Positions 20,583-62,729 of a DNA stretch of 64,000 bases are shown piece by piece. The position numbers and the translations under genes are program-made. Source of the stretch: Macrostomum lignano (Eukaryota); the NCBI GenBank assembly GCA_002269645.1, contig NIVC01000323.1, positions 290,092 through 354,091 of the forward strand, in the 5' to 3' direction. The notes under the pieces are model-generated. The model saw nothing but the letters and a program-made list of their open reading frames with translations. It made no database searches and was not told where the DNA came from. Numbering within the stretch: the first letter of the stretch is position 1; each line of letters begins with the position of its first letter.

Positions 20583-22055
20583 CTGGGTGGAGAGGTGAGA
20601 AAGGAGTCAGTGGAGGTGGATTTGCAGCGTGGCCCAAGCTCAACCCAAGGGAGGAAGACAGTCAGACTCACGGATGGAGGCGTTGAGCGACTGTCTGCGG
20701 GTGCTTTGGGTTTCTGGAATGTGTGAAGGAAAGCGAGGTAAGGTAGCGAAGTGATTGCGAGTAGAATGGCAACTAATGCAAACTGACTTGGTGGGATTCA
20801 GCAGCCGCAGCACCTGCCGCTGCTCAAATCGCTGTGCGAGCTGCTCACACATGAGGCCCTGACTGTCTCGATGGCTGGAATCGGCTCCATTGTCGATGAG
20901 AGTCTTGGCTGCTCGCACGTGACCGGCTTGGCAGGCTCGTGACAGAGCAGTGCGACCGTGAGTGTCTTGAGCGTGCAGTGAGGCGCCGAGTTGGATGAGT
21001 TGGTGAATGAGCTCGTGATGACCTGCATCAGCTGCGAGCATGAGAGCGGTGGCTCCGGTGTTGTCGTCTGGAAGATCGACATGCTGTGTGCTGAATCGCT
21101 CATAATTGAGCAGTGTGGAAGCAAGAGCGACGTGTCTTTGAGAGATGGAGAGACGGAGCAGGCATGTTATTTGATCTGGTTGCATTCGAGAGAGGGTGTC
21201 GTTGAGCACAAAGTTCCTGCCTTCAATGGCCTTTGCTGCAGTGAAGCTGAGGATGGAGCTGTATTTGAAAAGCCATTCCGGTTCGAGTACGAGGGAGGCA
21301 ACGACATTTTCGCGAAGACGAGAGCAAGCCGGGACTGCGCATTGGAAACGGAGATTCGCTCTCTGATCCGGACTCGAGAGACACGCAATGAGAAAATCGA
21401 CGATTTCAAAGTGACCCTCTTTTGCAGCGTTTTTGGCAGCATTGATGCAGCAGGTGTCCCTGTTTGGTTGGTCATTGATTTGCATGACGAGAAACTTGAC
21501 GATTTCAAAGTGACCCCGGTCTGCAGCAATACCGGCAGCTTTGGTGCAGTAGGTCTCCCTGATTGGTTGGTCATTGATTTGTGGAACTAAAAACTTGATG
21601 ATTTCATAGTGACCAGGAAGTACAGCCCATTCGGCAGCGTTTTTGCAGCAGGCGTCCCTTTTTAATCGGTCATTGATTCGTGAGACGAGAAACTTGACGA
21701 TTTCAAAGTGACCCCGGTCTGCAGCATTTACGGCAGCTTCGATGCAGCAGGTGTCCCTGTTTGATTGGTCATTGAATTGTGGAACTAGAAACTTGATGAT
21801 TTCAAAGTGACCATAAAGTAGAGCGCTTTCGGCAGCTTTATTACAGCAGGTGTCCCTGTTTGATCGGTCATTGATTTGTGAGACGAGAAACTTGACGTCT
21901 TCAACATGACCAATTCTTGTAGCAGTGCAAGTAGCCTCGACGATGTCGTTAAAGTTCCCGTGGGTTGCAGCGCGTCGAGCAGTTTGCGTGATGTTGTCGG
22001 TGGTGACGGACTGATGGCGACTTTGGTTTTGGTTCATTGTTCTGGAGAGCGGCAT
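17830..22055 (-). CDS. ANK-cGLR copy 1: ankyrin repeats plus cGAS-like/Mab-21 nucleotidyltransferase (~1137 aa, in frame)
   Basis: Exons 22055-20788, 20713-20672, 20582-20203 and 19553-17830 with GT-AG introns in phases 2, 2, 1; total 3414 nt. The start could instead be ATG 22037. Confidence 0.8.
20788..22055 (-). CDS. Copy 1 ankyrin exon: 5 atypical 33-aa repeats plus canonical ANK repeats
   Basis: GHFEIVKFLV...RDTCC repeats; GATALMLAADAGH and GRTALSRACQAGH. Confidence 0.9.
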
Positions 22056-23367
22056 TGGACGTGAAAGGCTAAAAGTGAGAGAAAAAGCAAGGAGGAAGGG
22101 AGAAAGAGAGGAGCGAGAAAATGGAATTGAGAAAGAGGGTAGGAAAAAGAGGGGGCGGAAAGGAGAAAGGCAGGAAGAGATAAAAAGGGGAGGGAGAGAG
22201 AAAGAGAGGAAGGGAGAGATGGAGAGGTGAATCTTACCTTTGATCTTTGGCTGCTGTCAAAGTAGCAGCTGTCAGTCACCGGTGCTGTCTGCAGCTCAGT
22301 TCGCCCTTATTGCCCCGGTCAGGCAGTCTAAAATTCAGATTATGCTGAAATGTTCAACCTGTTTACCTACCGCCTGCCCCAGCAATCTGAGCCTCACTAG
22401 GCACGGTTTAAATGGTAGCGTCATCCGTGCTGTCTATCTATCTATCTATCTATCTATTGCCAGGACCTGCACCGGAGCGGTTACGAAAATTAGATATCTC
22501 GGTAGTTGCTCGCACTCTTTTGCACTACTTGAGTAGTCTGATTTTCGTTCGGCATGGCTGGTTCCAGCAGGTAGTTCCTCTGGATAAAAGCGCTTACCGC
22601 GCCCATTGGCTTTCCAGCTGCCTTAATCGTTTCCGGTGATCTTGTGTGCGTGCTTTTAGCTTGATTGGCTCGCTTCGCTCGCTCTTTCTCGCTATCTACT
22701 ATCTATCTATCTATCTATCTATCTCTTAGATAGTGACTCTTAGTCAGTGAGCAATCGCAAGCCCAATTAACAGCCCACTCCAGGCAAACCCAGCAGACTG
22801 AAGCAGGGCAGAGCAGGACTCACCGATCGCCAGTTATGATTATGAACTCGCCAGTCTGCTGACGGAGCGGCAGGCAGAAACTCCCAGGCCGCAGAGAAGG
22901 CGGAACTCGCAAAAGCAGGCAGGAGGCTCTGCAGCAAGCAAACACTGATACTTGGGATAAAAGGAAGAGACAGAAGACGGCAGAGGGGCAGAAGTTCTAG
23001 CCAAGAGCAGCGGCGGGCTGCTACAGAAATACCGATCGCTGGTTGGAATGAGGAAAGGCTGGGAGAGAAAAACCAGACGGCAAGGCAGAGCAAAAAAACG
23101 CACAGCAGAGTGGGGTCTTGTCGATGCGAGTGTGTGCAGCGGCCACAATGGAAACTCATTCCCGCACATTGGGAGGGCTGACTGGGCAAACAGAGGAAAC
23201 ATAAAAGAAAGCATTTAGCCCTCACACCAATGAGTACATGTAACTGCGCATTGGCAGGAAAATCGTGTCCGAAACGCTTCCGGAATAGCAAAAGCAAAAT
23301 TGGCCATTTCAGTCTCGCTTTAAAGCCGGGATTCAGATCAGATTCTTCACAACTGAGACAAGCTTTA

Positions 23368-26032: not shown

Positions 26033-28107
26033 TTAATAATGCGACTCGAATTTGAGGACTCCGGCTGCTGCATCAAGTCTCTTTAGCTTCTGCCTGACCC
26101 AGCCGATCTTCTCCTCGTCCTGCGTCTCCATGGCGACGCGTCTCTCTTCCTCGATCATCTCCATCTGCTGCAGGCTGAGCTCCACGTGCTCGCGGCAGTC
26201 GCTGTAGTGAGCCAGAGTGAGCAGCTCCTCCAAGTCCGGGTCTCCAAGCAGCTGTTCAATCCAATGATCGAATGCGATTGCAGGTGCGCGATTGCGGAGC
26301 AGCTCAGCTTGGAGACTCCAGCTCAGGCAGCGGAAGTTCACGTACAGGTGGGAGGAGAGAGGCTGCGACAGTCTGGCTGTGAACAGAGTCTGCGTGAACT
26401 CGGGAAGGAATGGGAAGCGAGGCGGAGAGTCGCAGGGGAGGCAGAACCTCCACGCCCAGTCTGAGTCTTCTGGCAATTCAGTTTCTCTGATGAATTCTAT
26501 CCCTTCAATATCCTGTGGCATCAACCCTAACTGAACCTGATGTCTCTGCAGCTCCATCGCAAGTCTCTCCGAATCTTCGGATTCTCCGAACTTCAAATGC
26601 GCCATAGCGGTCATGCACAGGGCGGCGCACTTGCACCACTGCAGCTCATGCAGGAGACTGAGCTGCCTCATCAGGGTGTCTCTGTCGCTCGATTCCGACT
26701 GCAGCTCGCTCACACACTGGTGCACCACACTGTACACGTCTGCGAACTTATTGTAAAACCCTGACCACTTAGTTCCTTTCCTGATCTCCGTGACAGCAGG
26801 CGGCGCTGTCAGAGGCAGCAGAGTGAACGGGTGAAAGTAGAACTTCTCTGACTGCAGAGGTCTCACGAGTCTCATCAGCTGCTCGACCACTCCGCCGATG
26901 TCGCTTCTCAGCTCACAAAGTCGGTCTCGAACCCTCGCCTTCGTGTTGTCGAAGTCGCCGCCGATTCCAGCGTTCTTGAAGTAGAGCGGAGCGTCGGGCA
27001 TGAAGAAGTGCGGCATGCACTCATTGGGAGAGCTGCTGCTCGAGTCGATGAAGCTCAGCATCAAGTCGAGAGACTCGTTGAGCAGAGCGATCAGATTGTG
27101 GGGCTTCCAAGCCTCACTTGAAGGATCTGTGCCATGCTTCTCCAGCATTGTGAAGAGCAGAGTCTTTGCATGGTAGGTCTTGAGTCCAGGTGTGTCCAGA
27201 GTGAGCGGCAAGTGTCTTTTGAAGATGAACTTGATGAGTGTGAACAGCTGGCCCTGGACTGTGCTCATGTTTCTCATGATATCTTTCTCATGGAAGCTGA
27301 AGCTCACTCTGAGCTCATTGGTCGAGCTCGGTCTGGTCGCCCGAACAAGGTGTACATTATCATTAATACTCGTATAAGGAAGCAGTTTTTAATTCCATCT
27401 TCACAGAAACTGCTGCAGCACCAGATCGCATGGCACGTGTCCTGTGCAGGCCGCACACCGCACGCCGTCGCTGCCACTGCAGGTTGGCTGCCTGAAATGC
27501 GCAGAGAGCGGAGAGTCGCTTTATGGAGAGTGAAAAAGATGGGTTGGTTTGAAACTGCAAATTTTCTCTTGATTAGTTCAGTTTAAGTTTCTAATGAAAT
27601 ATCCTTTAAAAAAGAAAGTTTTTTTCACTTATTTGTTTAGCGGATCTGCATTCGCATTCAAAGAAGTTGCTGGAGGCTGATTGCATGCAGATTTCAGCAT
27701 TCTGATGATGAACCCAGCCTCACTCACCTGCGCCTACCGCCACCTGTACGTGGCCCTCCTTGTTCTGAAGCCGAGTGGCTGTTTTGCAGGAATCCAGCCA
27801 AATTCTTTGTTTACCGGTATTGCAGCCACCTTCCAGATGGAACTGATGCCCAGCAACCAGCACAGTCCAGTCAATGTCCAAGTCTGCAGCTGTCCTGCCG
27901 TTCACTTGCACCAGACTGTTGGCCCAGCCCTCTGCGTAGCTTCCCGTCATCTGCCTGCCATCCTGTGTGAGGACACGAGCGACTCCTTCCAGCCAGTCAG
28001 CCAGTCTCTGCTGACACTTTGCTCTCTGCTCGGTGAATCCAGCATCGCTGAGCAGTCGATGCAGCTCCTCGCTCAGACGTCTGTCTTGCTGGGAGTCGTC
28101 TGAGAGC
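26033..28107 (-). CDS. Copy 2 NTase/Mab-21 half (frameshifted)
   Basis: GSYAEG...DLDID; SFSFHEK, LKTYHAKTLLF and PHFFMP. Confidence 0.8.
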
Positions 28108-28162
28108 CTGGAATGATCCGAGATGCGTGTGGGTGACTTGCTCAAAGTTGGATGGACAGAAC

Positions 28163-28551
28163 AAGCAGGAGAGCTGAGAGTGCAGCTGCTGCAGCACTCA
28201 GACTGGCATCTCAAGCAGGAGAGCTGAGAGTGCAGCTGCTGCAGCACTCAGACTGGCATCTCAAGCAGGAGAGCTGAGAGTGCAGCTGCTGCAGCACTCA
28301 GACTGGCATCTCAAGCAGGAGAGCTGAGAGTGCAGCTGCTGCAGCACTCAGACTGGCATCTCAAGCAGGAGAGCTGAGAGTGCAGCTGCTGCAGCACTCA
28401 GACTGGCATCTCAAGCAGGAGAGCTGAGAGTGCAGCTGCTGCAGCACTCAGACTGGCATCTCAAGCAGGAGAGCTGAGAGTGCAGCTGCTGCAGCACTCA
28501 GACTGGCATCTCAAGCAGGAGAGCTGAGAGTGCAGCTGCTGCAGCACTCAG
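28163..28551. repeat. 50-bp intronic satellite E, copy 2 (~8 units)
   Basis: CAAGCAGGAGAGCTGAGAGTGCAGCTGCTGCAGCACTCAGACTGGCATCT repeated; internally palindromic. Confidence 0.95.
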
Positions 28552-29066
28552 TCCAACCCAATCTCAACCCTGCTGAGTTTCGCTGCAATTTCTGCCCCAA
28601 GCTGCCAGCCTGTTAGAAGGCGCAATGCGGCAGTGAAAGCCGAACCGATCAGACTCACCGATGGAGGCCCGAATCCAAGAGGTGAGCGGCTGCCTGTCGG
28701 GCCTCTGGGCTTCTGCAATGCAGGAAGGAAAGGAAGTTCTTACAGCATTTGAGTCTAAGATTTTCAAAGTCAAAAAGAGAAAGCAGAGGCAGGCGGAAGC
28801 AGAATACCGAGAGAAAGCAGACAATTAGCAAGAGATAGTCGAGTCAATACCGGGAATACCACCATTTCAAAGAGAAGTTGCTTGCTGGACGGGAGATTTG
28901 TGAGTTGAAAATATTGAAGCGGCTGCGGTCTGCAGTGAGCTGCACCTGAGCAAACCGCTGCCCAGATAGGGGCTGCTCACGAAATCATGATATCACGAAA
29001 ACAGCGAGTGACCATCCTATAATGGGACTCCTATTATTCGAAAAACCGGTTTTTGAACTTCTGTTT

Positions 29067-30514: not shown

Positions 30515-30516
<2 letters not shown>

Positions 30517-30580: not shown

Positions 30581-30583
<3 letters not shown>

Positions 30584-30694: not shown

Positions 30695-32160
30695 CCCGCT
30701 CCACTGGGATCCAGCAGCCGCAGCACCTGCCGCTGCTCAAACCGCTGTGCCACCTGTGCACACGTCAGACCCCGACCGTCTCGATGACTCGCATCCGCTC
30801 CTCTGTCCATCAGAACCTTGGCTGCTCGCGCGTGACCGGCTTCGCACGCTCGTGACAGAGCAGTCCGACCCTGACTGTCTTCAGCACGCACTGACGCACC
30901 GAGATCGATGAGTTTCTCAATGAGTTCGTGATGACCTGCATCAGCTGCCAGCATGAGAGCAGTGGCTCCAGTGCTGTCTTCTGGCAGATCGACATGCTCT
31001 GTGCTCACTCGCTCATCATTGATCAGTGTGACAGCAAGAGCGACGTGTCTTTGAGAGATGGAGAGACAAAGCAGCTCTGTGATGCGAGCTGGCTGCATTC
31101 GAGAGAGGGTGTCGTTGAGAACAGAGTTTATGCCTTCGATGGCCATTGCTGCAGTGAAGCTGAGGATGGTGCTGGATTGGAAGAGCCAGTCGGGCTCGAG
31201 GCCGAGGGAGGCAACGACATCTTCGAAAAGACGAGAGCAAGCCGCGACTGCGCATTGGAAACGAAGATTCGCTCTTTGATCCGGACTTGAGAGACACGAG
31301 ATGAGGAACTTGACGACTTTTTCTTGATTCGATTCTGCAGCAGATTTGGCAGAGTCAATGCAGAACTGATCTCTTTTTGTTGGGTCAGCGACTGTCTGCA
31401 CCAGAAACTTCACCACTTTTAACTGACCCTCGGTTGCAGCAGATTCGGCAGCCTCGATGCAGCACTGATCTCTTTTTGTTTGTTCAGAGACTGTCTGCAG
31501 AAGAAACTTCACCACTTCTAATTGACCATTGATTGCTGCAGATTTTGCTACCTTCCTGCAGAACTGATCTCTTTTTGTTTGTTCAGAGACTGTCTGCACA
31601 AGAAACTTCACCATTTCTAATTGACCATTGATTGCTGCAGATTTTGCTGCCTTCCTGCAGCACTGATCTTTGTTTGTCTGGTCAGCTATTGTCTGCACCA
31701 GAAACTTGACCACTTCTAACTGACCTTTGTATGCGCCTTGTTTTGCTGCCTCAATGCAGCACTGATCTCTGTTTGTTTGGTCAGTGACTTTCTGCACCAG
31801 AAACTTCACCACATCCCACTCACCAGCGAATCCAGCATATTCCGCAGTCCCCATGCAGCACTGATCTCTGTTCATTTGATCAAGGATTGTCTGCACCAGA
31901 AACTTCACCACATCCCACTCACCAGCGGATGCAGCATATTCCGCAGCCCCAATGCAGCACAGATCTCTGTTTGTTCGGTCAGCGACTGTAGGCACGAGAA
32001 ATTTCACCACATCCCACTGTCTTTCTTTAGCTGCAATTGGCACACATTTTTCACAAAAGTTTGTTTTGTCTTTCTCGCTTTTCTGAAGCTGCAAATGATG
32101 CTGCAGTGCTTGGATGTCTCCAGCCTTCACGGCTTCGTAAGCGCTTTCTCTTTGGCTCAT
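30695..32160 (-). CDS. Copy 2 ankyrin exon: 7 atypical repeats plus canonical ANK repeats
   Basis: G.(W/L)(D/E)VVKFLVQT..DQT.RDQCC repeats; in-frame TAA 15 nt upstream of the ATG; GTGAGT donor at 30694. Confidence 0.9.
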
Positions 32161-34462: not shown

Positions 34463-35303
34463 CTGAGCACGAGTTTCATTGGAATCTGAGCACGAGTTTC
34501 ACTCTGGAATCTGAGCACGAGTTTCACTCTGGAATCTGAGCACGAGTTTCATTGGAATCTGAGCACGAGTTTCACTCTGGAATCTGAGCACGAGTTTCAT
34601 TGGAAACTGAGCACGAGTTTCACTGGAATCTGAGCACGAGTTTCATTGGAATCTGAGCACGAGTTTCATTGGAATCTGAGCACGAGTTTCACTCTGGAAT
34701 CTGAGCACGAGTTTCATTGGAAACTGAGCACGAGTTTCACTGGAATCTGAGCACGAGTTTCACTGGAATCTGAGCACGAGTTTCATTGGAATCTGAGCAC
34801 GAGTTTCACTCTGGAATCTGAGCACGAGTTTCACTCTGGAATCTGAGCACGAGTTTCACTGGAATCTGAGCACGAGTTTCACTCTGGAATCTGAGCACGA
34901 GTTTCATTGGAAACTGAGCACGAGTTTCACTGGAATCTGAGCACGAGTTTCATTGGAATCTGAGCACGAGTTTCATTGGAATCTGAGCACGAGTTTCACT
35001 CTGGAATCTGAGCACGAGTTTCATTGGAAACTGAGCACGAGTTTCACTGGAATCTGAGCACGAGTTTCACTGGAATCTGAGCACGAGTTTCATTGGAATC
35101 TGAGCACGAGTTTCACTCTGGAATCTGAGCACGAGTTTCACTCTGGAATCTGAGCACGAGTTCCACTGGAATCTGAGCACGAGTTTCACTGGAGTCTGAG
35201 CACGAGTTTCACTGGAGTCTGAGCACGAGTTTCACTGGAATCTGAGCACGAGTTTCACTGGAGTCTGAGCACGAGTTTCACTCTGGAATCTGAGCACGAG
35301 TTC
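34463..35303. repeat. Satellite B, spacer 2 (~36 copies)
   Basis: Directly visible 23/25-bp units. Confidence 0.95.
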
Positions 35304-42693: not shown

Positions 42694-44764
42694 TTAATAA
42701 TGCGACTCGAATTTGAGGACTCCGGCTGCTGCATCAAGTCTCTTTAGCTTCTGCCTGACCCAGCCGATCTTCTCCTCGTCCTGCGTCTCCATGGCGACGC
42801 GTCTCTCTTCCTCGATCATCTCCATCTGCTGCAGGCTGAGCTCCACGTGCTCGCGGCAGTCGCTGTAGTGAGCCAGAGTGAGCAGCTCCTCCAAGTCCGG
42901 GTCTCCAAGCAGCTGTTCAATCCAATGATCGAATGCGATTGCAGGTGCGCGATTGCGGAGCAGCTCAGCTTGGAGACTCCAGCTCAGGCAGCGGAAGTTC
43001 ACGTACAGGTGGGAGGAGAGAGGCTGCGACAGTCTGGCTGTGAACAGAGTCTGCGTGAACTCGGGAAGGAATGGGAAGCGAGGCGGAGAGTCGCAGGGGA
43101 GGCAGAACCTCCACGCCCAGTCTGAGTCTTCTGGCAAATTAGTTTCTCTGATGAATTCTATCCCTTCAATATCCTGTGGCATCAACCCTAACTGAACCTG
43201 ATGTCTCTGCAGCTCCATCGCAAGTCTCTCCGAATCTTCGGATTCTCCGAACTTCAAATGCGCCATAGCGGTCATGCACAGGGCGGCGCACTTGCACCAC
43301 TGCAGCTCATGCAGGAGACTGAGCTGCCTCATCAGGGTGTCTCTGTCGCTCGATTCCGACTGCAGCTCGCTCACACACTGGTGCACCACACTGTACACGT
43401 CTGCGAACTTATTGTAAAACCCTGACCACTTAGTTCCTTTCCTGATCTCCGTGACAGCAGGCGGCGCTGTCAGAGGCAACAGAGTGAACGGGTGAAAGTA
43501 GAACTTCTCTGACTGCAGAGGTCTCACGAGTCTCCTCAGCTGCTCGACCACTCCGCCGATGCGCTTCTCAGCTCACAAAGTCGGTCTCGAACCCTCGCCT
43601 TCGTGTTGTCGAAGTCGCCGCCGATTCCAGCGTTCTTGAAGTAGAGCGGAGCTTTGGGCATGAAGAAGTGCGGCATGCACTCATCGGGCGAGCTGCTCGA
43701 GTCGATGAAGCTCAGCATCAAGTCGAGAGACTCGTTGAGCAGAGCGATCAGATTGTGGGGCTTCCAAGCCTCACTTGAAGGATCTGTGCCATGCTTCTCC
43801 AGCATTGTGAAGAGTAGAGTCTTTGCATGGTAGGTCTTGAGTCCAGGTGTGTCCAGAGTGAGCGGCAAGTGTCTTTTGAAGATGAACTTGATGAGTGTGA
43901 ACAGCTGGCCCTGGACTGTGCTCATGTTTCTCATGATATCTTTCTCATGGAAGCTGAAGCTCACTCTGAGCTCATTGGTCGAGCTCGGTCTGGTCGCCCG
44001 AACAAGGTGTACATTATCATTAATACTCGTATAAGGAAGCAGTTTTTTAATTCCATCTTCACAGAAACTGCTGCAGCACCAGATCGCATAGCACGTGTCC
44101 TGTGCAGGCCGCACACCGCACGCCGTGGCTGCCACTGCAGGTTGGCTGCCTGAAATGCGCAGTGAGCGGAGAGTCGCTTTGTGGAGAGTGAAAAAGATGG
44201 GTTGGTTTGAAACTGCAAATTTTCTCTTGATTAGTTAAGTTTAAGTTTCTAATGAAATATCCTTTAAAAAAGAAAGTTTTTTCACTTATTTGTTTAGCGG
44301 ATCTGCATTCGCATTCAAAGAAGTTGCTGGGAGCTGATTGCATGCAGATTTCAGCATTCTGATGATGAACCCAGCCTCACTCACCTGCGCCTACCGCCAC
44401 CTGTACGTGGCCCTCCTTGTTCTGAAGCCGAGTGGCTGTTTTGCAGGAATCCAGCCAAATTCTTTGTTTACCGGTATTGCAGCCACCTTCCAGATGGAAC
44501 TCTTGCCCAGCAACCAGCACATTCCAGTCAATGTCCGAGTCTGCAGCTGTCCTGCCGTTCACTTGCACCAGACTGTTGGCCCAGCCCTCTGCGTAGCTGC
44601 CCGTCATCTGCCTGCCATCCTGTGTGAGGACTCGAGCGACTCCTTCCAGCCAGTCAGCCAGTCTCTGCTGACGCTTTGCTCTCTGCTCGGTGAATCCCGC
44701 ATCGCTGAGCAGTCGATGCAGCTTCTCGCTCAGACGTCTGTCTTGCTGGGAGTCGTCTGAGAGC
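42694..44764 (-). CDS. Copy 3 NTase/Mab-21 half (frameshifted)
   Basis: GSYAEG...DSDID; QDTCYAI; HLV; SFSFHEK; LKTYHAKTLLF. Confidence 0.8.
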
Positions 44765-44818
44765 CTGGAATGATCCGAGATGCGTGTGGGGGACTTTCTC
44801 AAGTTGGATGGACAGAAC

Positions 44819-45609
44819 AAGCAGGAGAGCTGAGAGTGCAGCTGCTGCAGCACTCAGACTGGCATCTCAAGCAGGAGAGCTGAGAGTGCAGCTGCTGCAG
44901 CACTCAGACTGGCATCTCAAGCAGGAGAGCTGAGAGTGCAGCTGCTGCAGCACTCAGACTGGCATCTCAAGCAGGAGAGCTGAAAGTGCAGCTGCTGCAG
45001 CACTCAGACTGGCATCTCAAGCAGGAGAGCTGAGAGTGCAGCTGCTGCAGCACTCAGACTGGCATCTCAAGCAGGAGAGCTGAGAGTGCAGCTGCTGCAG
45101 CACTCAGACTGGCATCTCAAGCAGGAGAGCTGAAAGTGCAGCTGCTGCAGCACTCAGACTGGCAATCTCAAGCAGGAGAGCTGAGAGTGCAGCTGCTGCA
45201 GCACTCAGACTGGCATCTCAAGCAGCAGAGCTGAGAGTGCAGCTGCTGCAGCACTCAGACTGGCATCTCAAGCAGGAGAGCTGAGAGTGCAGCTGCTGCA
45301 GCACTCAGACTGGCATCTCAAGCAGGAGAGCTGAGAGTGCAGCTGCTGCAGCACTCAGACTGGCATCTCAAGCAGGAGAGCTGAGAGTGCAGCTGCTGCA
45401 GCACTCAGACTGGCATCTCAAGCAGGAGAGCTGAGAGTGCAGCTGCTGCAGCACTCAGACTGGCATCTCAAGCAGGAGAGCTGAGAGTGCAGCTGCTGCA
45501 GCACTCAGACTGGCATCTCAAGCAGGAGAGCTGAGAGTGCAGCTGCTGCAGCACTCAGACTGGCATCTCAAGCAGGAGAGCTGAGAGTGCAGCTGCTGCA
45601 GCACTCAGT
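44819..45609. repeat. Satellite E, copy 3 (~16 units)
   Basis: Same 50-bp unit at the same intronic position as in copy 2. Confidence 0.95.
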
Positions 45610-46154
45610 CCAATTCAATCTCAGCCCTCCTGAGTTTCGCTGCAATTTCTGCCCCAAGCTGCCAGCCTGTTGGAAGGCGCAATGCGACAGTGAAAGCCGA
45701 ACCGGTCAGACTCACCGATGGAGGCCCGAATCCAAGAGGTGAGCGGCTGCCTGTCGGGCCCCTGGGCTTCTGCAATGCAGGAAGGAAAGGAATTTCTTAC
45801 AGCATTTGAGTCTAAGATTTTCAAAGTCAAAAATGCAAAGCAGAGGCAGGCAGAAGCAGAATACCGAGAGAAAGCAGACAATTAGCAAGAGAGAGTCGAG
45901 TCAATACCGGGAATACCACCACTTCAAAGAGAAGATCGCTTGCTGGACCGGAGATTGGTTAGTTGAATCGGGCTCGATTTGTTAGTTGAAAATACTGAAG
46001 CGGCTGCGGTCTGCAGTGAGCTGCACCTGAGCAAACCGCTGCCCAGATAGGGGCTGCTCACGAAATCATGATATCACGAAAACAGCGAGTGACCATCCTA
46101 TAATACGAGCTAGGACTCCTATTGTTCGAAAAACCGGTTTTTGAACTTCTGTTT

Positions 46155-47407: not shown

Positions 47408-48870
47408 CCCGCTCCACTGGGATCCAGTAGCCGCAGCACCTGCCGCTGCTCAAACCGCTGTGCCACCTGTGCACACGTCAGACCCCGACCGTCTCGATGA
47501 CTCGCATCCGCTCCTCTGTCCATCAGAACCTTGGCTGCTCGCGCGTGACCGGCTTCGCACGCTCGTGACAGAGCAGTCCGACCCTGACTGTCTTCAGCAC
47601 GCACTGACGCACCGAGATCGATGAGCTTCTCAATGAGCTCGTGATGACCTGCATCAGCTGCCAGCATAAGAGCAGTGGCTCCAGTGCTGTCTGGCAGATC
47701 GACATGCTCTGTGCTGACTCGCTCATCATTGATCAGTGTGACAGCAAGAGCGACGTGTCTTTGAGAGATGGAGAGACAAAGCAGCTCTGTGATGCGAGCT
47801 GGCTGCATTCGAGAGAGGGTGTCGTTGAGAACAGAGTTTATGCCTTCGATGGCCATTGCTGCAGTGAAGCTGAGGATGGTGCTGGATTGGAAGAGCCAGT
47901 CGGGCTCGAGGCCGAGGGAGGCAACGACATCTTCGAAAAGACGAGAGCAAGCCGCGACTGCGCATTGGAAACGAAGATTCGCTCTTTGATCCGGACTTGA
48001 GAGACACGAGATGAGGAACTTGACGACTTTTTCTTGATTCGATTCTGCAGCAGATTTGGCAGAGTCAATGCAGAACTGATCTCTTTTTGTTGGGTCAGCG
48101 ACTGTCTGCACCAGAAACTTCACCACTTTTAACTGACCCTCGGTTGCAGCAGATTCGGCAGCCTCGATGCAGCACTGATCTCTTTTTGTTTGTTCAGAGA
48201 CTGTCTGCACAAGAAACTTCACCACTTCTAATTGACCATTGATTGCTGCAGCTTTTGCTACCTTCCTGCAGAACTGATCTCTTTTTGTTTGTTCAGAGAC
48301 TGTCTGCACAAGAAACTTCACCACTTCTAATTGACCATTGATTGCTGCAGATTTTGCTGCCTTCCTGCAGCACTGATCTTTGTTTGTCCGGTCAGCTATT
48401 GTCTGCACCAGAAACTTTACCACTTCTAACTGACCTTTGTATGCGCCTTGTTTTGCTGCCTCAATGTAGCACTGATCTCTGTTTGTTTGGTCAGTGACTT
48501 TCTGCACCAGAAACTTCACCACATCCCACTCACCAGCGAATCCAGCATATTCCGCAGTCCCCATGCAGCACTGATCTCTGTTAATTTGGTCAAGGATTGT
48601 CTGCACCAGAAACTTCACCACATCCCACTCACCAGCGGATGCAGCATATTCCGCAGCCCCAATGCAGCACAGATCTCTGTTTTCTCGGTCAGCGACTGTG
48701 GGCACGAGAAATTTCACAACCTCCCACTGTCTTTCTTTAGCTGCAATTGGCACACATTTTTCACAAAAGTTTGTTTTATCTGTCTCGCTTTTCTGAAGCT
48801 GCAAATGATGCTGCAGTGCTTGGATGTCTCCAGCCTTCACGGATTCGTAAGCGCTTTCTCTTTGGCTCAT
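47408..48870 (-). CDS. Copy 3 ankyrin exon (7 atypical repeats)
   Basis: Near-identical to copy 2; phase-2 GTGAGT donor at 47407. Confidence 0.9.
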
Positions 48871-50475: not shown

Positions 50476-51686
50476 CACCAGGGCTTTAGCACCAGGGGCT
50501 TTAGCACCAGGGGCTTTAGCACCAGGGACGCCATCACCAGGGGCTTTAGCTCCAGGGGCTTTAGCACCAGGGGCTTTAGCACCAGGGGCTTTAGCACCAG
50601 GGGCGCCAGCACCAGGGGCTTTAGCACCAGGGGCTTTAGCACCAGGGGCTTTAGCACCAGGGGCTTTAGCACCAGGGGCTTTAGCACCAGGGGCTTTAGC
50701 ACCAGGGGCTTTAGCACCAGGGGCTTTAGCACCAGGGGCTTTAGCACCAGGGGCTTTAGCACCAAGGGCTTTAGCACCAGGGGCTTTAGCACCAGGGGCT
50801 TTAGCACCAGGGGCTTTAGCACCAGGGGCTTTAGCACCAGGGGCTTTAGCACCAGGGGCTTTAGCACCAGGGGCTTTAGCACCAGGGGCGCCATCACCAG
50901 GGGCTTTAGCTCCAGGGGCTTTAGCACCAGGGGCGCCATCACCAGGGGCTTTAGCTCCAGGGGCTTTAGCACCAGGGGCTTTAGCACCAGGGGCGCCAGC
51001 ACCAGGGGCTTTAGCACCAGGGGCTTTAGCACCAGGGGCTTTAGTTCCAGGGGCTTTAGCACCAGGGGCTTTAGCACCAGGGGCTTTAGCACCAGGGGCT
51101 TTAGCACCAGGGGCTTTAGCGCCAGGGGCTTTAGCACCAGGGGCTTTAGCACCAGGGGCTTTAGCACCAGGGGCGCCAGCACCAGGGGCGCCAGCACCAG
51201 GGGCTTTAGCACCAGAGGCTTTAGCACCAGGGGCGCCAGCACCAGGTGCTTTAGCACCAGGGGCTTTAGCACCAGGGGCTTTAGCACCAGGGGCGCCAGC
51301 ACCAGGGGCTTTAGCACCAGGGGCGCCAGCACCAGGGGCTTTAGCACCAGGGGCGCCAGCACCAGGGGCTTTAGCACCAGGGGCTTTAGCACCAGGGGCT
51401 TTAGCACCAGGGGCTTTAGCACCAGAGGCTTTAGCACCAGGGGCGCCAGCACCTTAGGGTCTTTAGCACCAGGGGCTTTAGCACCAGGGGCTTTAGCACC
51501 AGAGGCTTTAGCACCAGGGGCGCCAGCACCAGGGGCGCCAGCACCAGGGGCGCCAGCACCAGGGGCTTTAGCACCAGGGGCTTTAGCACCAGGGGCTTTA
51601 GCACCAGGGGCGCCAGCACCAGGGGCTTTAGCACCAGGGGCTTTAGCACCAGGGGCTTTAGCACCAGGGTCTTTAGCACCAGGGGC
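50476..51686. repeat. Satellite A large array (15 bp; left block at 49254-49555)
   Basis: ACCAGGGGCTTTAGC, ~80 copies; source of the LAPGA and LVLKP ORFs. Confidence 0.97.
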
Positions 51687-52438: not shown

Positions 52439-53452
52439 CTGAGCACGAGTTTCACTGGAATCTGAGCACGAGTTTCACTGGAATCTGAGCACGAGTTTCA
52501 CTGGAATCTGAGCACGAGTTTCACTGGAATCTGAGCACGAGTTTCACTGGAATCTGAGCACGAGTTTCACTGGAATCTGAGCACGAGTTTCATTGGAATC
52601 TGAGCACGAGTTTCACTCTGGAATCTGAGCACGAGTTTCATTGGAATCTGAGCACGAGTTTCACTGAAATCTGAGCACGAGTTTCACTGGAATCTGAGCA
52701 CGAGTTTCACTGGAATCTGAGCACGAGTTTCATTGGAATCTGAACACGAGTTTCATTGGAATCTGAGCACGAGTTTCACTGGAATCTGAGCACGTGTTTC
52801 ACTCTGGAATCTGAGCACGAGTTTCACTGGAATCTGAGCACGAGTTTCACTCTGGAATCTGAGCACGAGTTTCATTGGAATCTGAGCACGAGTTTCACTC
52901 TGGAATCTGAGCACGAGTTTCACTGGAATCTGAGCACGAGTTTCACTGGAATCTGAGCACGAGTTTCAGTGGAATCTGAGCACGAGTTTCATTGGAATCT
53001 GAGCACGAGTTTCACTGGAATCTGAGCACGAGTTTCATTGGAATCTGAGCACGAGTTTCATTGGAATCTGAGCACGAGTTTCACTCTGGAATCTGAGCAC
53101 GAGTTTCATTGGAATCTGAGCACGAGTTTCATTGGAATCTGAGCACCAGTTTCACTGGAATCTGAGCACGAGTTTCATTGGAATCTGAGCACGAGTTTCA
53201 TTGGAATCTGAGCACCAGTTTCACTGGAATCTGAGCACGAGTTTCATTGGAATCTGAGCACGAGTTTCACTGGAATCTGAGCACGAGTTTCACTGGAATC
53301 TGAGCACGAGTTTCACTGGAATCTGAGCACGAGTTTCACTGGAATCTGAGCACGAGTTTCATTGGAATCTGAGCACGAGTTTCACTGGAATCTGAGCACG
53401 AGTTTCATTGGAATCTGAGCACGAGTTTCATTGGAATCTGAGCACGAGTTTC
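52439..53452. repeat. Satellite B, spacer 3 (~44 copies)
   Basis: Directly visible. Confidence 0.95.
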
Positions 53453-53767: not shown

Positions 53768-53920
53768 CGGCGCCCTTTTGCTGCTGCCCCTGCACTGCGG
53801 CCTGGCATTGGCGCCCTTTTGCTGCTGCCCCTGCATTGCGGCCTGGCATTGGCGCCCTTTTCCTGCTGCCCCTGCATTGCGGCCTGGCATTGGCGCCCTT
53901 TTCCTGCTGCCCCTGCATTG
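53768..53920. repeat. Satellite C, spacer 3 (~4 copies)
   Basis: Directly visible. Confidence 0.9.
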
Positions 53921-55814: not shown

Positions 55815-58800
55815 TCAGAATAAGCAGTTTGATTCAACAACGTCTCTCCAGCTATCGATGTACTCGTTTTGTAAAAAAATTACTGACAAACAGAAGCAAA
55901 ACCACAGCAAAGCAAAGCAAAATAAAACAAAAGTCTTCCTTGTGCGACCTTGGTTTTGCGATTTGACTTGGAGTAGTTCGGATGCTCCATCAAGTCTCTC
56001 CAGCTTCTCCAGTCTCATCCGACTGAGCTTGGCGTGAGTCCATCTGTTTCTCTGCTCCGCTGCAGTTTCCATGGCAACCAGGCGACCCAAGTCGGCCCCG
56101 TCTCGCCGCAGCCTCGCCCTCGCCCACAGCCTCCGCTCCTCATCTTCCCTGCTGCGGTGAGCACCGCTGTCACTGCCGCTGCGGTTCGAAACTCGCCACC
56201 GCTTCTGCCTGACCCAGCCGATCTTCTCCTCGTCCTGCGTCTCCATGGCGACGCGTCTCTCTTTCTTGATCATCTCCATCTGCTGCAGGCTGAGCTCCAC
56301 GCGCTCGCGGCAGTCGCTGTAGTGAGCCAGAGTGAGCAGCTCCTCCAAGTCCGGGTCTCCAAGCAGCTGTTCAATCCAATGATCGAATGCGATTACAGGT
56401 GCGCGATTGCGGAGCAGCTCAGCTTGGAGACTCCAGCTCAGGCAGCGGAAGTTCACGTACAGGTGGGAGGAGAGAGGCTGCGACAGTCTGGCTGTGAACA
56501 GAGTCTGCGTGAACTCGGGAAGGAATGGGAAGCGAGGCGGAGAGTCGCAGGGGAGGCAGAACCTCCACGCCCAGTCTGAGTCTTCTGGCAGTATTTTATT
56601 GAACACGTACCAGCTCTCGTTGTTTTGAATATCCTGTGGCATCAACCCTGATTCAACCTGATGTCTCTGAAGCTCCATCGCGAGTCTCTCAGCCTTCTCA
56701 GATTCTCCGAACTTCAAATGCGCCATGGCGGTCATGCACAGGGCGGCGCACTTGCACCACTGCAGCTCATGCAGGAGACTGAGCTGCCTCATCAGGGTGT
56801 CTCTGTCGCTCGATTCCGACTGCAGCTCGCTCACACACTGGTGCACCACACTGTACACGTGAGTCCATCTGTGAGTCCATCTGTTTCTCTGCTCCGCTGC
56901 AGTTTCCATGGCAACCAGGTGACCCAAGTCGGTCCCGTCTCGCCTCGCCATCGCCCACAGCCTCCGCTCCTCATCTTCCCTGCTGCGGTGAGCACCGCTG
57001 TCACTGCCGCTGCGGTTCGAAACTCGCCACCGCTTCTGCCTGACCCAGCCGATCTTCTCCTTGTCCTGCGTCTCCATGGCGACGCGTCTCTCTTTCTCGA
57101 TCATCTCCATCTGCTGCAGGCTGAGCTCCACGTGCTCGCGGCAGTCGCTGTAGTGAGCCAGAGTGAGCAGCTCCTCCAAGTCCGGGTCTCCAAGCAGCTG
57201 TTCAATCCAATGATCGAATGCGATTACAGGTGCGCGATTGCGGAGCAGCTCAGCTTGGAGACTCCAGCTCAGGCAGCGGAAGTTCACGTACAGGTGGGAG
57301 GAGAGAGGCTGCGACAGTCTGGCTGTGAACAGAGTCTGCGTGAACTCGGGAAGGAATGGGAAGCGAGGCGGAGAGTCGCAGGGGAGGCAGAACCTCCACG
57401 CCCAGTCTGAGTCTTCTGGCAGTATTTTATTGAACATGTACCAGCTCTCGTTGTTTTGAATATCCTGTGGCATCAACCCTGATTCAACCTGATGTCTCTG
57501 AAGCTCCATCGCGAGTCTCTCAGCCTTCTCAGATTCTCCGAACTTCAAATGCGCCATGGCGGTCATGCACAGGGCGGCGCACTTGCACCACTGCAGCTCA
57601 TGCAGGAGACTGAGCTGCCTCATCAGGGTGTCTCTGTCGCTCGATTCCGACTGCAGCTCGCTCACACACTGGTGCACCAAACTGTACACATCTGCGAACT
57701 TGCAGTACAATTGTTGAGAGCCACTTCCTTTCCTGATCTCCGTGACAGCAGGCGGCGCTGTCAGAGGCAGCAGAGTGAACGGGTGAAAGTAGAACTTCTC
57801 TGACCGCAGAGGTCTCACGAGTCTCCTCAGCTGCTCGACCACTCCGCCGATGTCGCTTATCACCTCACAAAGTCGGTCTCGTACCCTCGCCTTCGTGTTG
57901 TCGAAGTTGCTGCCGATTCCAGCGTTCTTGAAGTAGAGCGGAGCGTCGGGCATGAAGAAGTGCGGCATGCACTCATCGGGAGAGCTACTCGAGTCGATGA
58001 AGCTCAGCATCATGTCGAGAGACTCCTTGAGCAGAGCGATCAGATTGTGGGGCTGCCAAGCCTCATTTTTAGGATGGGTGCCATGCTTCTCCAGCATGAA
58101 GAATAGCAGAGTCTTTGCATGGTAGGTCTTGAGTCCAGGTGTGTCCAGAGTGAGCGGCAAGTGTCTCTTGAAGATGAACTTGATGAGTGTGAACAGCTGG
58201 CCCTGGACTGTGCTCAGGTCTCTCATGATGTCTTTCTCTTGAAAGCTGAAGCTCACTCTGAGCTCGTTGGTCGAGCTCGGTCTGGTCGCCCTAACGAGGT
58301 GAACATCATTCCTGTTTGCAGTCAGTTTTTTAATCCTGTCCTTACAGAATCTGCTGCAGCACAGGATCGCATGGCACGTGTCCTGTGCAGGCCGCACACC
58401 GCACGCCGTGGCTGTCACTGCTGGTTGGCTGCCTGAAGAGCGCAGTGAGAGGAGAGTCGCTTTGTGGCGAGTGAAAAAAAATGGTTGGTTTGAAACTGCA
58501 GATTTTCTTTTGGCTCGTTTGGAGTTTTAAGTATTTCAAAATATCCTTTGAAACGAAGGGTAGAATTTTATTTAATCCTGCAATAAATGTTTTGGCGGAA
58601 ACGCCATTTACACACTCGCCAAATGTACACATGCGCGCTAATGCTATTTATGTTTATTCAGTCCTCCAATTTTATTCAGCAGATTTTTGGCACCCGCCAA
58701 AGCTTTGGCAATTTTTGGCACTCCACAGAATTTACACGCTCTCTGAAGAGCCAAATATATGCATTTGTGAGGCATGAGCCTCTGCACCCACTAAGTTAGC

Positions 58801-59593
58801 CCAGCTTCAGCTTCAGCTGCTCTGGCTTCATCAGGTTGCAGCTCAGCACAGCTGATCAAGCATCATCAGGACTCAGTGCCAGCAGCAAGGCACCAATCAG
58901 GCAGTCAGGGCGGCTTTTCCAATTTTATTTGAATTTTTGAACTGAGAGCAGCGGCACCTACGCAGAGCCGTGCCGCCTACCGTGGGTCACCCAAGCACCG
59001 CTGCACCCACTCTGCTGCAATCGGAGCCTGTGAATTCAAAACCCAATGGCCCGGCTCAGCCAGTCGGCATCAGAGTTTTCTTTTCAATTTCGCCTGCCGC
59101 TTGTTTCAGCACCCAAGCCGACATTCGCAGTCACAGAAGCTGCTGGACTCTTGTTCGCCACTCGGGCGAATTTGAAATTGAGCAAAGTTAACTTGCTCCT
59201 AGTTGCATGCGGATCTCAACATTCTAATGATGAACCCAGCCTCACTCACCTGCTCCCACTGCAACCTGTGCGTGGCCCTCCGTGACCTGCAGCCGAGTGG
59301 CGTCTCTGCATTGCTGCCGATCTCTGTTGCAGCCACCTTCCAGATGGAACTGCTGCCCAGCAACCAGCACAGTCCAGTCAATGTCCGAGTCTGCAGCTGT
59401 CCTGCCGTTCACTTGCACCAGACTGTTGGCCCAGCCCTCTGCGTAGCTGCCCGTCATCTGCCTGCGATCGTCATCCTGTGTGAGGACTCGAGCCACTTCT
59501 TCCAGCCTGTCAGCCAGTCTCTGCTGACACTTTGCTCTCTGGTCAGTGAATCCCGCATCGCTGAGCAGTCGATGCAGCTCCTCGTCTGAGAGT
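55815..59593 (-). CDS. Copy 4 NTase/Mab-21 half
   Basis: GSYAEG...DSDID; QDTCHAI; HLV; SFSFQEK; LKTYHAKTLLFF; PHFFMP. Confidence 0.88.
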
Positions 59594-62500
59594 CTGGAAG
59601 GATGCGAGTGTGTAAAGTATTGAAGGTCAGAGTGCAGGTGCAGTCAGTAGAGACGGATTTTAAAATTGCAGTGGCCAAGCTCATGTAGTGCATGCGCCCT
59701 TGTCAGTTGGCAGGGCGCGTTGCACTTTGGGGCTGGTTGGGGGGTTGGCGGGCGTGGCAGGGTCTGGCCGCCGGCCGTGCTTTGCGCGTGCCCCTCCCCA
59801 GCCGTGCCCCTGCCCCGTGCTCAGGGCTGGTTGGCTGCGGCCGGGTCAGCTTTGGCGCGGGTGCAGCCCCTCCCCCCTTAGGCGGGGTTTTGATTGGCTG
59901 GGCCGGCGTGGTTTGTTTTGGTGAGCTTAGCCGGTGGGGCCATCGGCCCCAGGGTTCGGTTATTATTTAATGCGGCTCTAGGCCTTGCTCACGCCCTTCG
60001 CGCTGTTTCTCTGTTTCTCTGTTTCTCTGTTTGTTCTGTTTGTTTTGCTCGTGCTGTTTCGTGCTTTGGAATTGGTGTGCTCGCAGAGTACAAGTGCGAG
60101 ACTAGACAGTTAAACAGCAACTCTAGCTATTGAATACTCTAGCTAAGAAACACAAGAGCCTTAAGAAGAATCTCGGAGGTTAGAACCTGCACTGTACAAC
60201 GAGCGAATCAATGAACGCAATAGCGATTTGGCCACTGGTAAGCCGCCTGCTGTTTGAGTTCTTTCTTTTCTGGGAGCTTGTTAGGCTGAGTTCTTGCCAG
60301 AGCGTCATAACGCCGGTAGATCATATAGCTTTTGTAGTACTGTACCGTCTACTCTATATAGTGTGTACAACCTACAGTCTCGAGACTAGAAGCACCCGAG
60401 AGTGTCACCACACCTCGAGCCGCAGCGTGAACTCTGAGTGTCACAACACCAGAAGGATCGGACTATTATCGCAGAGCGTCGTTACGCCTGCTCGTATTCA
60501 TAAAAGTACAGACAGAGTGTCACAACGCCTGTTATATAACGTATAATATATATTGTACTCGGGACTGGGCACCCAAACCGACCCGGACACTCAATCCAAG
60601 GAAGGCAGGTGGCAGTAAAAGCGGCCAGACTCACGGATGGAGGCAGTGAGCGTCTGGCTGGGGTTGCTGTGTGTTTCTGGAATGTGTGAAGGAAAGCGAG
60701 GTAAGGTAGCGAAGTGATTGCGAGTAGAATGGCAACTAATGCAAACTGACTTGGTGGGATTCAGCAGCCGCAGCACCTGACTCTGCTCAAATCGCTGTGC
60801 GAGCTGCGCACACGTGAGGCCCTGACTGTCTCGATGGCTGGCATCGGCTCCATTGTCGATGAGAGTCTTCGCTGCTCGCACGTGACCGGCTTGGCAGGCT
60901 CGTGAGAGAGCAGTGCGACCGTGAGTGTCTTGAGCGTGCAGTGAGGCGCCGAGATCGATGAGTTTGTGAATGAGCTCGTGATGACCTGCATCAGCTGCGA
61001 GCATGAGAGCGGTGGCTCCGGTGTTTTTATCTGGGATATCGACATTCTGTGTGCTGAATCGCTCATGATTGAGCAGTGTGGCGGCAAGAGCGACGTGTCT
61101 TTGAGAGATGGAGAGACGAAGCAGGTGTGTGATTTGAGCCGACTTCATTCGAGAGAGGGTTTTGTTGAGAACAGAGTTCCTGCCTTCGATGGCCATTGCT
61201 GCAGTGAAGCTGAGGATGGTGTTGGATTGGAAAAGCCAGTCGGGCTCGAGGCCGCCGAGGAAGGCAATGACACTTTCGCGAAGACGAGAGCAAGCCGCGA
61301 CTGCGCACTGAAAACGGAGATTCGCTTTTAGATCGGGACTTGAGAGACACGCGATGAGGAACTCAGCGATTTCAAATTGACCACAAAATACAGCTTTTTC
61401 AGCGGCTTTGATGCAGCAGGTGTCCCTGTTTGATTGGCACTTGATATGTGAGACAAGAAACTTGACGATTTCAAAGTGACCATTTTCTGCAGCTTTTTCG
61501 GCAGTTTTGATGCAGCAGGTGTCCCTGTTTAACTGGTCACTGATTTGTGGGGCGAGAAACTTGACGATTTCAAAGTAACCCTTGACTGCAGCTTTTTTGG
61601 CAGCATTGATGCAGCAGGTGTCCCTGTTCGATTGGTCATTGATTTGAGGGACGAGAAACTTGACGATTTCAAAGTGACCATTGTCTGCAGCTTTTTCGGC
61701 AGTTTTGATGCAGCAGGTGTCCCTGTTCGATTGGTCATTGATTTGTGAGACGAGAAACTTGATGATATCAAAGTGACTGGAGACGAGAAACTTGACCATT
61801 TTAAAGTAACTGTTGACTGCAGCTTTTTCGGCAGCTTTGATGCAGCAGGTGTCCCTGTTCTTTTGGTCATTGATTTGTGAGACGAGAAACTTGACGATTT
61901 TAAAGTGACTATTGACTGCAGCTTTTTTGGCAGCATTGATGCAGCAGGTGTCCCTGTTTGATTGGTCACTGATTTGTGGAACGAGAAACTCGACGATTTC
62001 AAAGCGACCATTACGTGCAGCAGATTCGGCAGCAATGATGCAGCAGGTGTCCCTGTTTGATTGGTCATTGATTTGTGCGATGAGAAACTTGACGAATTCA
62101 AAGTAACCCTTGACTGCAGCTTTTTCGGCAGCATTGATGCAGCGGGTGTCCCTGTTTGATTTTCCATTGATTTGTGATAGGAGAAACTCGGCGACTTCGA
62201 AGCGGCCAAACAATGCAGCTCTTTTGGCAGCAATGATGCAGCAGGTGTCCCTGTTTGATTGGTCATTGATTTGTGCGATGAGAAACTTGACGAATTCAAA
62301 GTAACCCTTGACTGCAGCTTTTTCGGCAGCATTGATGCAGCGGGTGTCCCTGTTTGATTTTCCATTGATTTGTGATAGGAGAAACTCGGCGACTTCGAAG
62401 CGGCCAAACAATGCAGCTCTTTTGGCAGCTTTGATGCAGCAGGTGTCCCTGTTTGATTGGTCATTGATGTGTGGGACGAGAAACTTGACGATTTCAAAGT

Positions 62501-62729
62501 AACCAAAAAATGCAGCTCTTTTGGCAGCATTGATGCAGCATGTGTCCCTGTTTGATTGGTCATTGATTTGTGGAACGAGTAACTTGACGTCTTCAAAGCG
62601 ACCCTTGCGTACAGCAGTGCAAATGTCCTGATGGATGTCAGATAAGTGCCCTTCGGTTGCAGCACCTCGAGCAGTTGGCGTGATGTTGTCTATGGTGATG
62701 CGCTGATGGCGACTTTGACTTTGACCCAT
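55815..62729 (-). CDS. ANK-cGLR copy 4 (~1660 aa, in frame; 12 N-terminal repeats; duplicated C-terminal module)
   Basis: Exons 62729-60751, 60676-60635, 59593-59250 and 58432-55815 in phases 2, 2, 1; total 4983 nt. Confidence 0.8.
59684..60589. mobile_element. Solo LTR (906 bp) in an intron of copy 4
   Basis: TGT...ACA termini and 4-bp TSD CTCA (59680-59683, 60590-60593); the empty site matches copy 1 (AAGCTCAACCCAAGG). Confidence 0.8.
60751..62729 (-). CDS. Copy 4 ankyrin exon: 12 atypical 33-aa repeats, one partial repeat and canonical ANK repeats
   Basis: FEIVKFLV.QINDQSNRDTCCI.AA..AA..G repeats at 99-bp periodicity. Confidence 0.9.

Follow-up and report, generated by a model that had tools for sequence, protein, structure and literature searches.

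Ankyrin-type repeat arrays of variable length, joined to cGAS-like enzymes in the flatworm Macrostomum lignano, carry a hypervariable stripe and may act as diversifying recognition modules

What are the repeat arrays that precede cGAS-like enzymes in a flatworm for, and why do their units vary so strongly at so few residues? The question is raised by a 64-kb stretch of DNA (hereafter the window), the terminal 64 kb of Macrostomum lignano contig NIVC01000323.1 (assembly GCA_002269645.1; the ends of window and contig coincide), in which four paralogous genes (copies 1 to 4) lie head-to-tail, all on the minus strand. Each joins an array of 33-amino-acid (33-aa) units, related to ankyrin (ANK) repeats, to a nucleotidyltransferase of the Mab21/cGAS type, as in cGAS-like receptors (cGLRs). 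A reading made from the letters of the window alone (the sequence-only reading) had described these arrays as a reshufflable ligand-recognition module coupled to a second-messenger enzyme. The evidence presented here makes it somewhat more probable than not that the array is a recognition module with a diversifying specificity stripe, tethered to a cGLR enzyme.

Arrays of a 99-bp period were detected in all four genes by Tandem Repeats Finder (5.3 copies at 21390-21911, 6.8 at 31336-32010, 6.8 at 48046-48717 and 12.0 at 61391-62607), and translation resolved 5, 7, 7 and 12 full 33-aa units in copies 1 to 4, respectively, with one degenerate cap unit ahead of each array; the repeat numbers first proposed are therefore upheld by both approaches. 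Each unit follows the register Q1-I-N-D-Q-S-N-R-D-T-C-C-I-x14-A-A-x17-x18-A-A-x21-x22-G23-H24-F-E-I-V-K-F-L-V-x33, and unit 8 of copy 4 contains in addition an insertion of 11 aa. The di-residues at x21-x22 that had been listed for copy 1 (Table 1), copy 2 (SA FA YK IN IN TE ES) and copy 4 (FF LF VK LF VK RN VN VN DN VK EN FC) are all exact. Downstream of the units, the linker and the canonical ANK segment are conserved between copies, as had been claimed (dN 0.08-0.13; dN/dS about 0.5). Copies 2 and 3 are the product of one recent segmental duplication of ~17 kb, at 94-97% DNA identity, so that the window holds three independent arrays rather than four. An assembly artefact is an unlikely origin of the repeat numbers, the arrays spanning 1.2 kb or less and their units being 73-100% identical.

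That the repeats are ankyrin-type was corroborated by both profile and structure comparisons. Pfam Ank_2 matched the arrays at E values from 1e-47 to 1e-52, in six to nine stretches that span the arrays at an exact spacing of 33 aa. AlphaFold2 models were obtained for a full-length paralog, P0001 (predicted local distance difference test score (pLDDT) 81.7; predicted template modelling score 0.76), and for copy 4 exon A (pLDDT in Table 1); in both, the units stack without a break into a solenoid, each unit having a helix of 17-18 residues followed by one of 9-10, at a pLDDT of 85-97. The best Foldseek match of the array was the 24-repeat structure of AnkB (5y4d; E=5e-12, TM-score 0.50), and 48 of the best 50 were ANK proteins or fusions of designed ankyrin repeat proteins (DARPins); with the full-length model, only ankyrin appeared among the 50 matches listed. 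The ankyrin TPLH motif and beta-hairpin are absent: TPLH is replaced by a nearly invariant (R)D-T-C-C-I-x-A-A, and the hairpin stretch is predicted to lie within the 17-18-residue first helix of every unit, which makes the unit a derived, non-canonical ANK variant. In an ungapped alignment, AAxxGHFEIVKFLV corresponds to AADAGHHELIHQLI of the genes' own canonical repeats and likewise to the DARPin consensus; hence the di-residue (21/22) occupies ankyrin positions 13 and 14, and the equation of these residues with the xx of the DARPin motif AAxxGH proved correct. A Cys-Cys pair at unit positions 11-12, which stands in the place of TPLH, is nearly invariant in all arrays, and packing, redox or metal binding are candidate roles for it.

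The most variable residues of the unit are the two that precede the conserved Gly, as the sequence-only reading had noted. Over the 24 window units, the entropy is highest at positions 21 and 22 (3.2 and 3.0 bits), with positions 18, 14 and 24 also raised. The same two positions are again the most varied in independent arrays from other contigs, and over the wider family (77 unique units from about 20 proteins) the values are 3.55 bits at position 21 and 3.08 at 22, position 18 being next with 2.76. Along the long helix, residues C11-C12, A15-A16 and A19-A20 form a conserved face, while the variable positions 10, 14, 17, 18, 21 and 22 form the opposite one. The helical variability moment (0.59) points to 171 degrees and the hydrophobic moment to 11 degrees (permutation P=0.004), so that the variation is neither evenly spread nor found on the packing face. 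If the long helix is aligned with ankyrin helix 1, the exposed variable face would correspond to the concave groove of the solenoid.

Selection on these positions was assessed from the DNA of the units. At codons 21-22, pairwise Nei-Gojobori estimates were saturated (pN 0.55-0.76, against a whole-unit pS of 0.20-0.30), and the averaging of multi-nucleotide changes over paths inflates their synonymous counts; tree-based and single-step counts were used in their place, made by parsimony on a neighbour-joining tree of 68 unique unit sequences (DNA) that were taken from the window and five further loci. Relative to the global synonymous rate, the nonsynonymous rate on this tree was 3.2-fold at site 21, 2.7-fold at site 22 and 2.6-fold at site 18. 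Counting single-step changes only, codons 18, 21 and 22 accumulated 38 nonsynonymous and 3 synonymous ones (omega about 3.15); in the remaining 30 codons, omega was 0.71 (Fisher P=0.0034). Of the 117 codon replacements that involved more than one nucleotide, 49 fell in the same three codons. Recent duplicates gave a similar picture: among 38 nearest-neighbour pairs of units (at least 88% nucleotide identity), 44 of the 174 amino-acid-changing codon differences (25%) were located at codons 18, 21 and 22, where 15.8 were expected (P=3e-10), and the ratio of nonsynonymous to synonymous differences there was 44:2. With the caveats given below, the counts lend moderate support to diversifying selection at the hot codons.

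The arrays also change in length by whole units. A recent duplication of a 198-bp block is indicated in copy 4 by the 97% and 100% DNA identity of units 2-3 and 4-5, and a 198-bp period was returned by Tandem Repeats Finder in copies 1 and 4. Blocks of units are likewise repeated in paralogs outside the window (MN-IR-FM twice in P0004; IR-IR and IN-IN-IN in P0041). The nine units of P0008 are 82% identical (framework 91%) and differ mainly at positions 17-18 and 21-25. Family proteins have up to 12 units of this type, with longer arrays in more divergent members. Of the reshuffling that had been proposed, in-frame block duplication is thus substantiated by copy 4. As to exchange between paralogs, copy 1 has units that resemble those of copy 4 as closely as they resemble one another, which shows common ancestry and is no proof of exchange between genes. 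Towards the other end of the genes, paralogs differ less at synonymous sites: the divergence is about 0.26 in exon A and 0.05-0.10 in the C-terminal domain, a gradient that suggests gene conversion which homogenizes the 3' exon and leaves the sensor end to diverge.

The partner of the array belongs to the cGAS/Mab21 nucleotidyltransferases, consistent with the second-messenger enzyme anticipated by the sequence-only reading. Pfam Mab-21_C (PF20266) was matched with 25.8 and 29.0 bits (curated cut-off 24.1), and NACHT and NB-ARC gave no match in the Pfam scan. A search of the PDB with the enzyme part as a single sequence (phmmer) found no match; a profile of ten family members recovered cGAS (E=5e-6), cGLR1 (8gjy; 2.5e-5) and MAB21L1 (0.009). 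All four copies encode GSYAEGW and S-D-I-D (both in exon B) and AQD, in agreement with the motif G[S/G]...[D/E]x[D/E]...[D/E]. Among 30 family members there is no variation at G400, S401 and D422, and at least 90% keep D424 and D483; in the ten-member set all five are invariant. The dN/dS of the Mab21 core between paralogs is about 0.3, a sign of purifying selection, and that of the C-terminal domain is 0.6-1.5. Exon B further encodes, in a segment inserted after the DxD strand and before the third Asp, an H-x4-C-x5-C...G-H pattern (for example at 20203-20330); its first His and the G-H are invariant and both Cys are present in at least 90%. The pattern could form a metal site, placed differently from the zinc thumb of cGAS.

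Put together, these features suggest the following scheme. The N-terminal solenoid of modified 33-aa ankyrin units would bind a ligand or a partner, and its length would change via in-frame duplication of blocks of one or two units (99 or 198 bp). Specificity would reside in positions 14, 17/18 and 21/22, with 21/22 dominant, which would line up as a stripe on the exposed side of the long inner helix and the diversity of which would be maintained by selection. A flexible linker encoded by a micro-exon is proposed to tether the array to the Mab21/cGAS nucleotidyltransferase; this micro-exon (42-51 nt) sits between exon A and exon B in all copies, and the equivalent residues, found in annotated paralogs, have a pLDDT below 50 in the P0001 model. 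Engagement of the array would then cause the enzyme to make a nucleotide second messenger; in some paralogs it would instead switch on a directly fused caspase or kinase. Judged from the sequences, the stripe would face the concave groove and bind a ligand that is probably a protein, the enzyme would be active and the system would be immune.

A number of observations weigh against the array being a diversifying recognition module. The units had been called highly similar within each gene; they are similar, but only moderately so (75-83% at the nucleotide and 58-69% at the amino-acid level). Placement of the di-residue on an ankyrin binding surface derives from register and helical periodicity, not from coordinates. 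In ankyrin repeats at large, positions 13 and 14 belong to the least conserved, and the pattern is therefore partly generic. The hot sites 18, 21 and 22 were picked post hoc, after the data had been seen, and recombination among units breaks the single-tree assumption of the parsimony counts. In site-wise binomial tests that used the synonymous counts of each site itself, sites 21 and 22 were not significant (dN/dS about 1.1-1.3); of the site-level positive selection envisaged in the sequence-only reading, then, what stands is that amino-acid changes are in excess at codons 18, 21 and 22, and what does not is strict significance at 21 and 22. Nor has array length moved lately in every gene, as copies 2 and 3 both still have 7 units since their duplication; over the same time the 50-bp satellite of their first intron came to differ, with 7.8 repeats in copy 2 but 15.8 in copy 3 although the segments are about 97% identical, and other satellites changed too. 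With unit number retained while adjoining satellites changed up to twofold, the coding arrays are not hyper-unstable. Two genes, moreover, bear frameshifts in exon C: in copy 2, one A is deleted from an A-run at 27378-27399, just past the third catalytic Asp, and in copy 3 a 1-bp deletion within 43553-43569, past Mab-21_C, turns GCGACATC into GCGCATC. The last point comes from published work: the activity-label column of Table S3 in Li et al. 2023, as far as that source was accessible, is blank for the five M. lignano rows, which concern isolated enzyme domains; those rows of active enzymes that were checked do carry the label.

Some of these points would also suit an array that serves as a scaffold, an autoinhibitory domain or an oligomerization domain without ligand specificity, the di-residue being a pair of relaxed exposed sites and repeat number a by-product of a genome prone to tandem duplication. 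The genomic setting is in line with this, as the window is rich in satellites (periods 15, 17, 23, 37, 41 and 50 bp) and other coding expansions in frame occur in the same family (poly-Asp, an 837-bp duplication in copy 4, LLGDPD repeats in paralogs); so are the omega of about 0.8 over whole units, the local dN/dS at sites 21 and 22, and the variability of positions 13 and 14 in most ankyrin proteins. What such a scaffold does not predict is a replacement rate at codons 18, 21 and 22 of about three times the pooled synonymous rate, together with the 44:2 ratio in recent duplicates, where neutrality predicts about 1. Neither does it account for a framework that is kept while replacements of the hot codons often involve two or three bases, or for coding arrays that are steadier than the adjoining satellites (copies 2 and 3). 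On balance we regard the scaffold as a minority possibility, clearly less probable than the recognition module.

The frameshifts in copies 2 and 3 raise another alternative, that of a decaying cluster in which young pseudogenes of an over-expanded family vary by drift. The annotated protein of copy 3 is truncated because of its 1-bp deletion, and the dN/dS of the C-terminal domain would also be compatible with decay. Yet copies 1 and 4 have open frames of at least 1137 codons in four exons with consensus splice sites; the four-exon model of copy 1 gives 1137 aa with zero internal stops. The Mab21 core is under constraint and its catalytic residues are intact in all four copies, the A-run indel of copy 2 could be an error of long-read assembly, and drift would not focus changes on three codons. 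Decay of the whole cluster is thus improbable, and the recognition module is preferred.

A third alternative starts from what active cGLRs respond to. In the screen of Li et al. 2023, 15 of 140 enzymes were active, several of them with unknown ligands, and the active ones with identified ligands respond to double-stranded DNA or double-stranded RNA (here and below, as far as the accessible parts of that source go). With regular 33-aa units and a variable di-residue at a helix-turn junction, the array might accordingly be imagined as a reader of nucleic acids with a code like that of TAL effectors (TALEs) or PPR proteins, each di-residue specifying a base. The fold, though, is that of ankyrin and not of TALEs; the 77 units have 48 different di-residues, far beyond the needs of a four-letter code; and the arrays are near neutral (isoelectric point 6.2-6.3 in copies 1 and 2, 8.8 in copy 4), with an acidic enzyme region in copy 1 (5.0, poly-Asp included). 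On these three grounds a TALE-like code is judged very improbable.

The architecture itself is already known. ANK- and TPR-fused cGLRs are described as minority architectures by Li et al. 2023, and those with ANK have the same enzyme family and the same domain order as the window genes; Table S2 of that work has an entry for PAA68676.1, which is P0001 (its identity to copy 1 is 82%), and assigns Ank_2 domains to it. Rows 89-93 of Table S3, which covers the biochemical screen, comprise five M. lignano proteins, including P0001, and the constructs start at or just before the enzyme domain, so that the arrays are excluded. Analysis of the arrays (repeat numbers, hypervariable sites, selection tests) is absent from the accessible parts of that paper, and the literature search found it in no other; a search for literature specific to the locus tags or to Macrostomum cGAS/STING yielded nothing useful. 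The repeat dynamics and the hypervariable stripe thus appear to be undescribed. They concern an animal phylum that is said to have largely lost cGLRs. Most animal cGLRs being orphan receptors, a clade in which the ankyrin array bears the marks of a diversifying binding surface suggests how the ligand range might extend beyond nucleic acids. Since M. lignano serves as a flatworm model in the laboratory, a recognition array can be put to the test there.

The closest counterpart of such an array may be found in fungi. The NLR sensors analysed by Dyrka et al. 2014 (PMC4986451) have internally conserved ANK, TPR or WD repeats with length polymorphism and positive selection on the concave face. Fungal NLR sensors (including het-e and het-d of Podospora) and the window genes alike feature in-frame tandem repeats of fixed length that vary in number and are attached to a signalling domain, and the few positively selected sites on the solenoid binding face of the former would have a counterpart, with moderate support, in codons 18, 21 and 22. 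They differ in that the partner is a nucleotide-binding oligomerization domain (NACHT/NB-ARC) there and a cGLR here, and in that the host here is an animal. The fungal arrays were defined by at least 85% identity over at least 100 aa, a level which the window arrays do not reach and which only P0008 approaches. Repeat number was compared among alleles in the fungi and among paralogs of one assembly here; a second assembly or allele of the cluster was sought, and the annotated gene was found only on the window's own contig (single assembly GCA_002269645.1). If the recognition module is real, the fungal strategy (a conserved repeat framework, duplication of units and a few varied exposed sites) would extend to animals.

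Two further comparisons are with DARPins and TAL effectors. In DARPins, library positions 13 and 14 correspond to the window di-residue, and DARPin fusions were among the top Foldseek matches. Other DARPin library positions are 2, 3, 5 and 33, and these are not all variable in the window units, where the residues that match them (TCC/I) are conserved and the hairpin is predicted as part of the long helix; variation is found instead one turn and two turns further up the long helix, at unit positions 14 and 17/18. TAL effectors likewise have a variable di-residue at the turn between two helices, in units of 33-35 aa, but differ in fold, in helix order and in the number of di-residue combinations. 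A bolder and more doubtful extension of the recognition module is that Macrostomum possesses a germline repertoire of DARPin-like binders wired to cGAS-like enzymes (to caspases or kinases in sister genes), in which an animal pattern-recognition family acquires specificity for protein rather than nucleic-acid ligands by duplication of units and by selection on a stripe of three to five residues per repeat; we regard this as a tentative possibility only. If true, it would be a functional parallel to the fungal NLR repeat sensors and would explain the blank activity label of the isolated enzyme domains in the published screen.

The four genes belong to a much larger family. When exon C of copy 1 was compared by HMMER with 1.84 billion representative proteins, 136 clusters were matched at E≤1e-3 and 76 at E≤1e-10. 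All 16 named clusters sampled at E<1e-8 were from M. lignano, and the weaker matches sampled included Mab21-type proteins of annelids and bivalves (Lamellibrachia, Sinanodonta), in which only the Mab21 core is matched. In a separate search, the first 50 matches were likewise all from M. lignano. Within the collection searched, the sequences therefore point to a very large radiation that is restricted to Macrostomum. In some members the cGLR part is followed by a C-terminal caspase (Peptidase_C14; P0085, P0209 and P0086) or protein kinase (P0010 and P0048), a fusion that fits a role in signalling or cell death. The order Mab21, ANK, caspase was seen in three separate gene models.

The coordinates of the four genes are collected in Table 1. 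The window is eukaryotic in look, with introns and abundant satellites. Each copy consists of exon A, a micro-exon, exon B and exon C, in this order. The intron-free exon A runs from the start codon through a degenerate cap unit and the array of 33-aa units to degenerate helix pairs (the linker) and canonical ANK repeats; exon C encodes the third catalytic Asp, the Mab-21_C domain and then a clade-specific C-terminal domain of ~400 aa. The exon order, micro-exon included, is confirmed by the NCBI model of copy 3 (P0029, BOX15_Mlig009595g1), which is identical to it; for copies 1 and 4, annotated counterparts are no closer than 85-89% identity. As the start codon of copy 4 lies 1.3 kb from the contig end (62729-64000 between), the tandem cluster may extend past the assembly break.

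Table 1. Positions of the exons and repeat arrays of the four genes, numbered along the window.
Feature	Position	Strand	Basis or remark
Copy 1 exon A: start codon, cap, 5 units, linker, canonical ANK	20788..22055	-	Open reading frame; Pfam Ank_2 E 1.4e-47; donor CAA/GTCAGT (slash, exon end), phase 2
Copy 1 array, 5 x 99 bp, di-residues LY DR LP DR KE	21384..21878	-	Translation
Copy 1 micro-exon, 42 nt, NPKHPQTVAQRLH, putative flexible tether between ANK and enzyme	20672..20713	-	Flanked by AG and GTGAGT sites, phases consistent
Copy 1 exon B, nucleotidyltransferase N-lobe, GSYAEGW and DSDID	20203..20582	-	Invariant G, S, D, D in family
Copy 1 exon C: third Asp (AQDTCHA), poly-Asp insert, Mab-21_C, C-terminal domain	17830..19553	-	PF20266 25.8 bits (cut-off 24.1)
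Copy 2 exon A	30695..32160	-	Open reading frame, translation
Copy 2 array, 7 units	31297-31989	-	Translation
Copy 2 micro-exon 28661-28711; exon B about 27726-28127; exon C 26033-27495	26033..28711	-	
Copy 3 exon A, annotated BOX15_Mlig009595g1	47408..48870	-	P0029 identical
Copy 3 array, 7 units	48007-48699	-	
Copy 3 micro-exon 45718-45768; exon B about 44383-44784; exon C 42694-44153	42694..45768	-	
Copy 4 exon A	60751..62729	-	AlphaFold2 pLDDT 85, each unit a long and a short helix
Copy 4 array, 12 units	61350-62570	-	33-nt insertion at 61746-61778
Copy 4 micro-exon 60635-60676; exon B about 59248-59643; exon C 55815-58439	55815..60676	-	In-frame 837-bp tandem duplication inside

Two of the coding expansions lie in exon C. 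The in-frame 837-bp tandem duplication of copy 4 (56034-56858 and 56871-57689, 98% identical) repeats the last ~279 codons of the C-terminal domain, and the poly-Asp tract of copy 1, absent from the other three copies, derives from a GAT/TCA microsatellite at 19334-19414. Satellites are dense both between and inside the genes (28162-28551, 44818-45608, 35633-38580, 34463-35302, 52439-53452, 50476-51686 and 15443-16509), with periods of 50, 41, 23, 15 and 40 bp, and the array of the 41-bp satellite comprises 72 copies. Retroelement fragments were found near family members, at 6982-7836 of the window and at 1-2773 of another locus (L006), and comprise reverse transcriptase and an open reading frame of the gag-protease-reverse transcriptase-integrase type.

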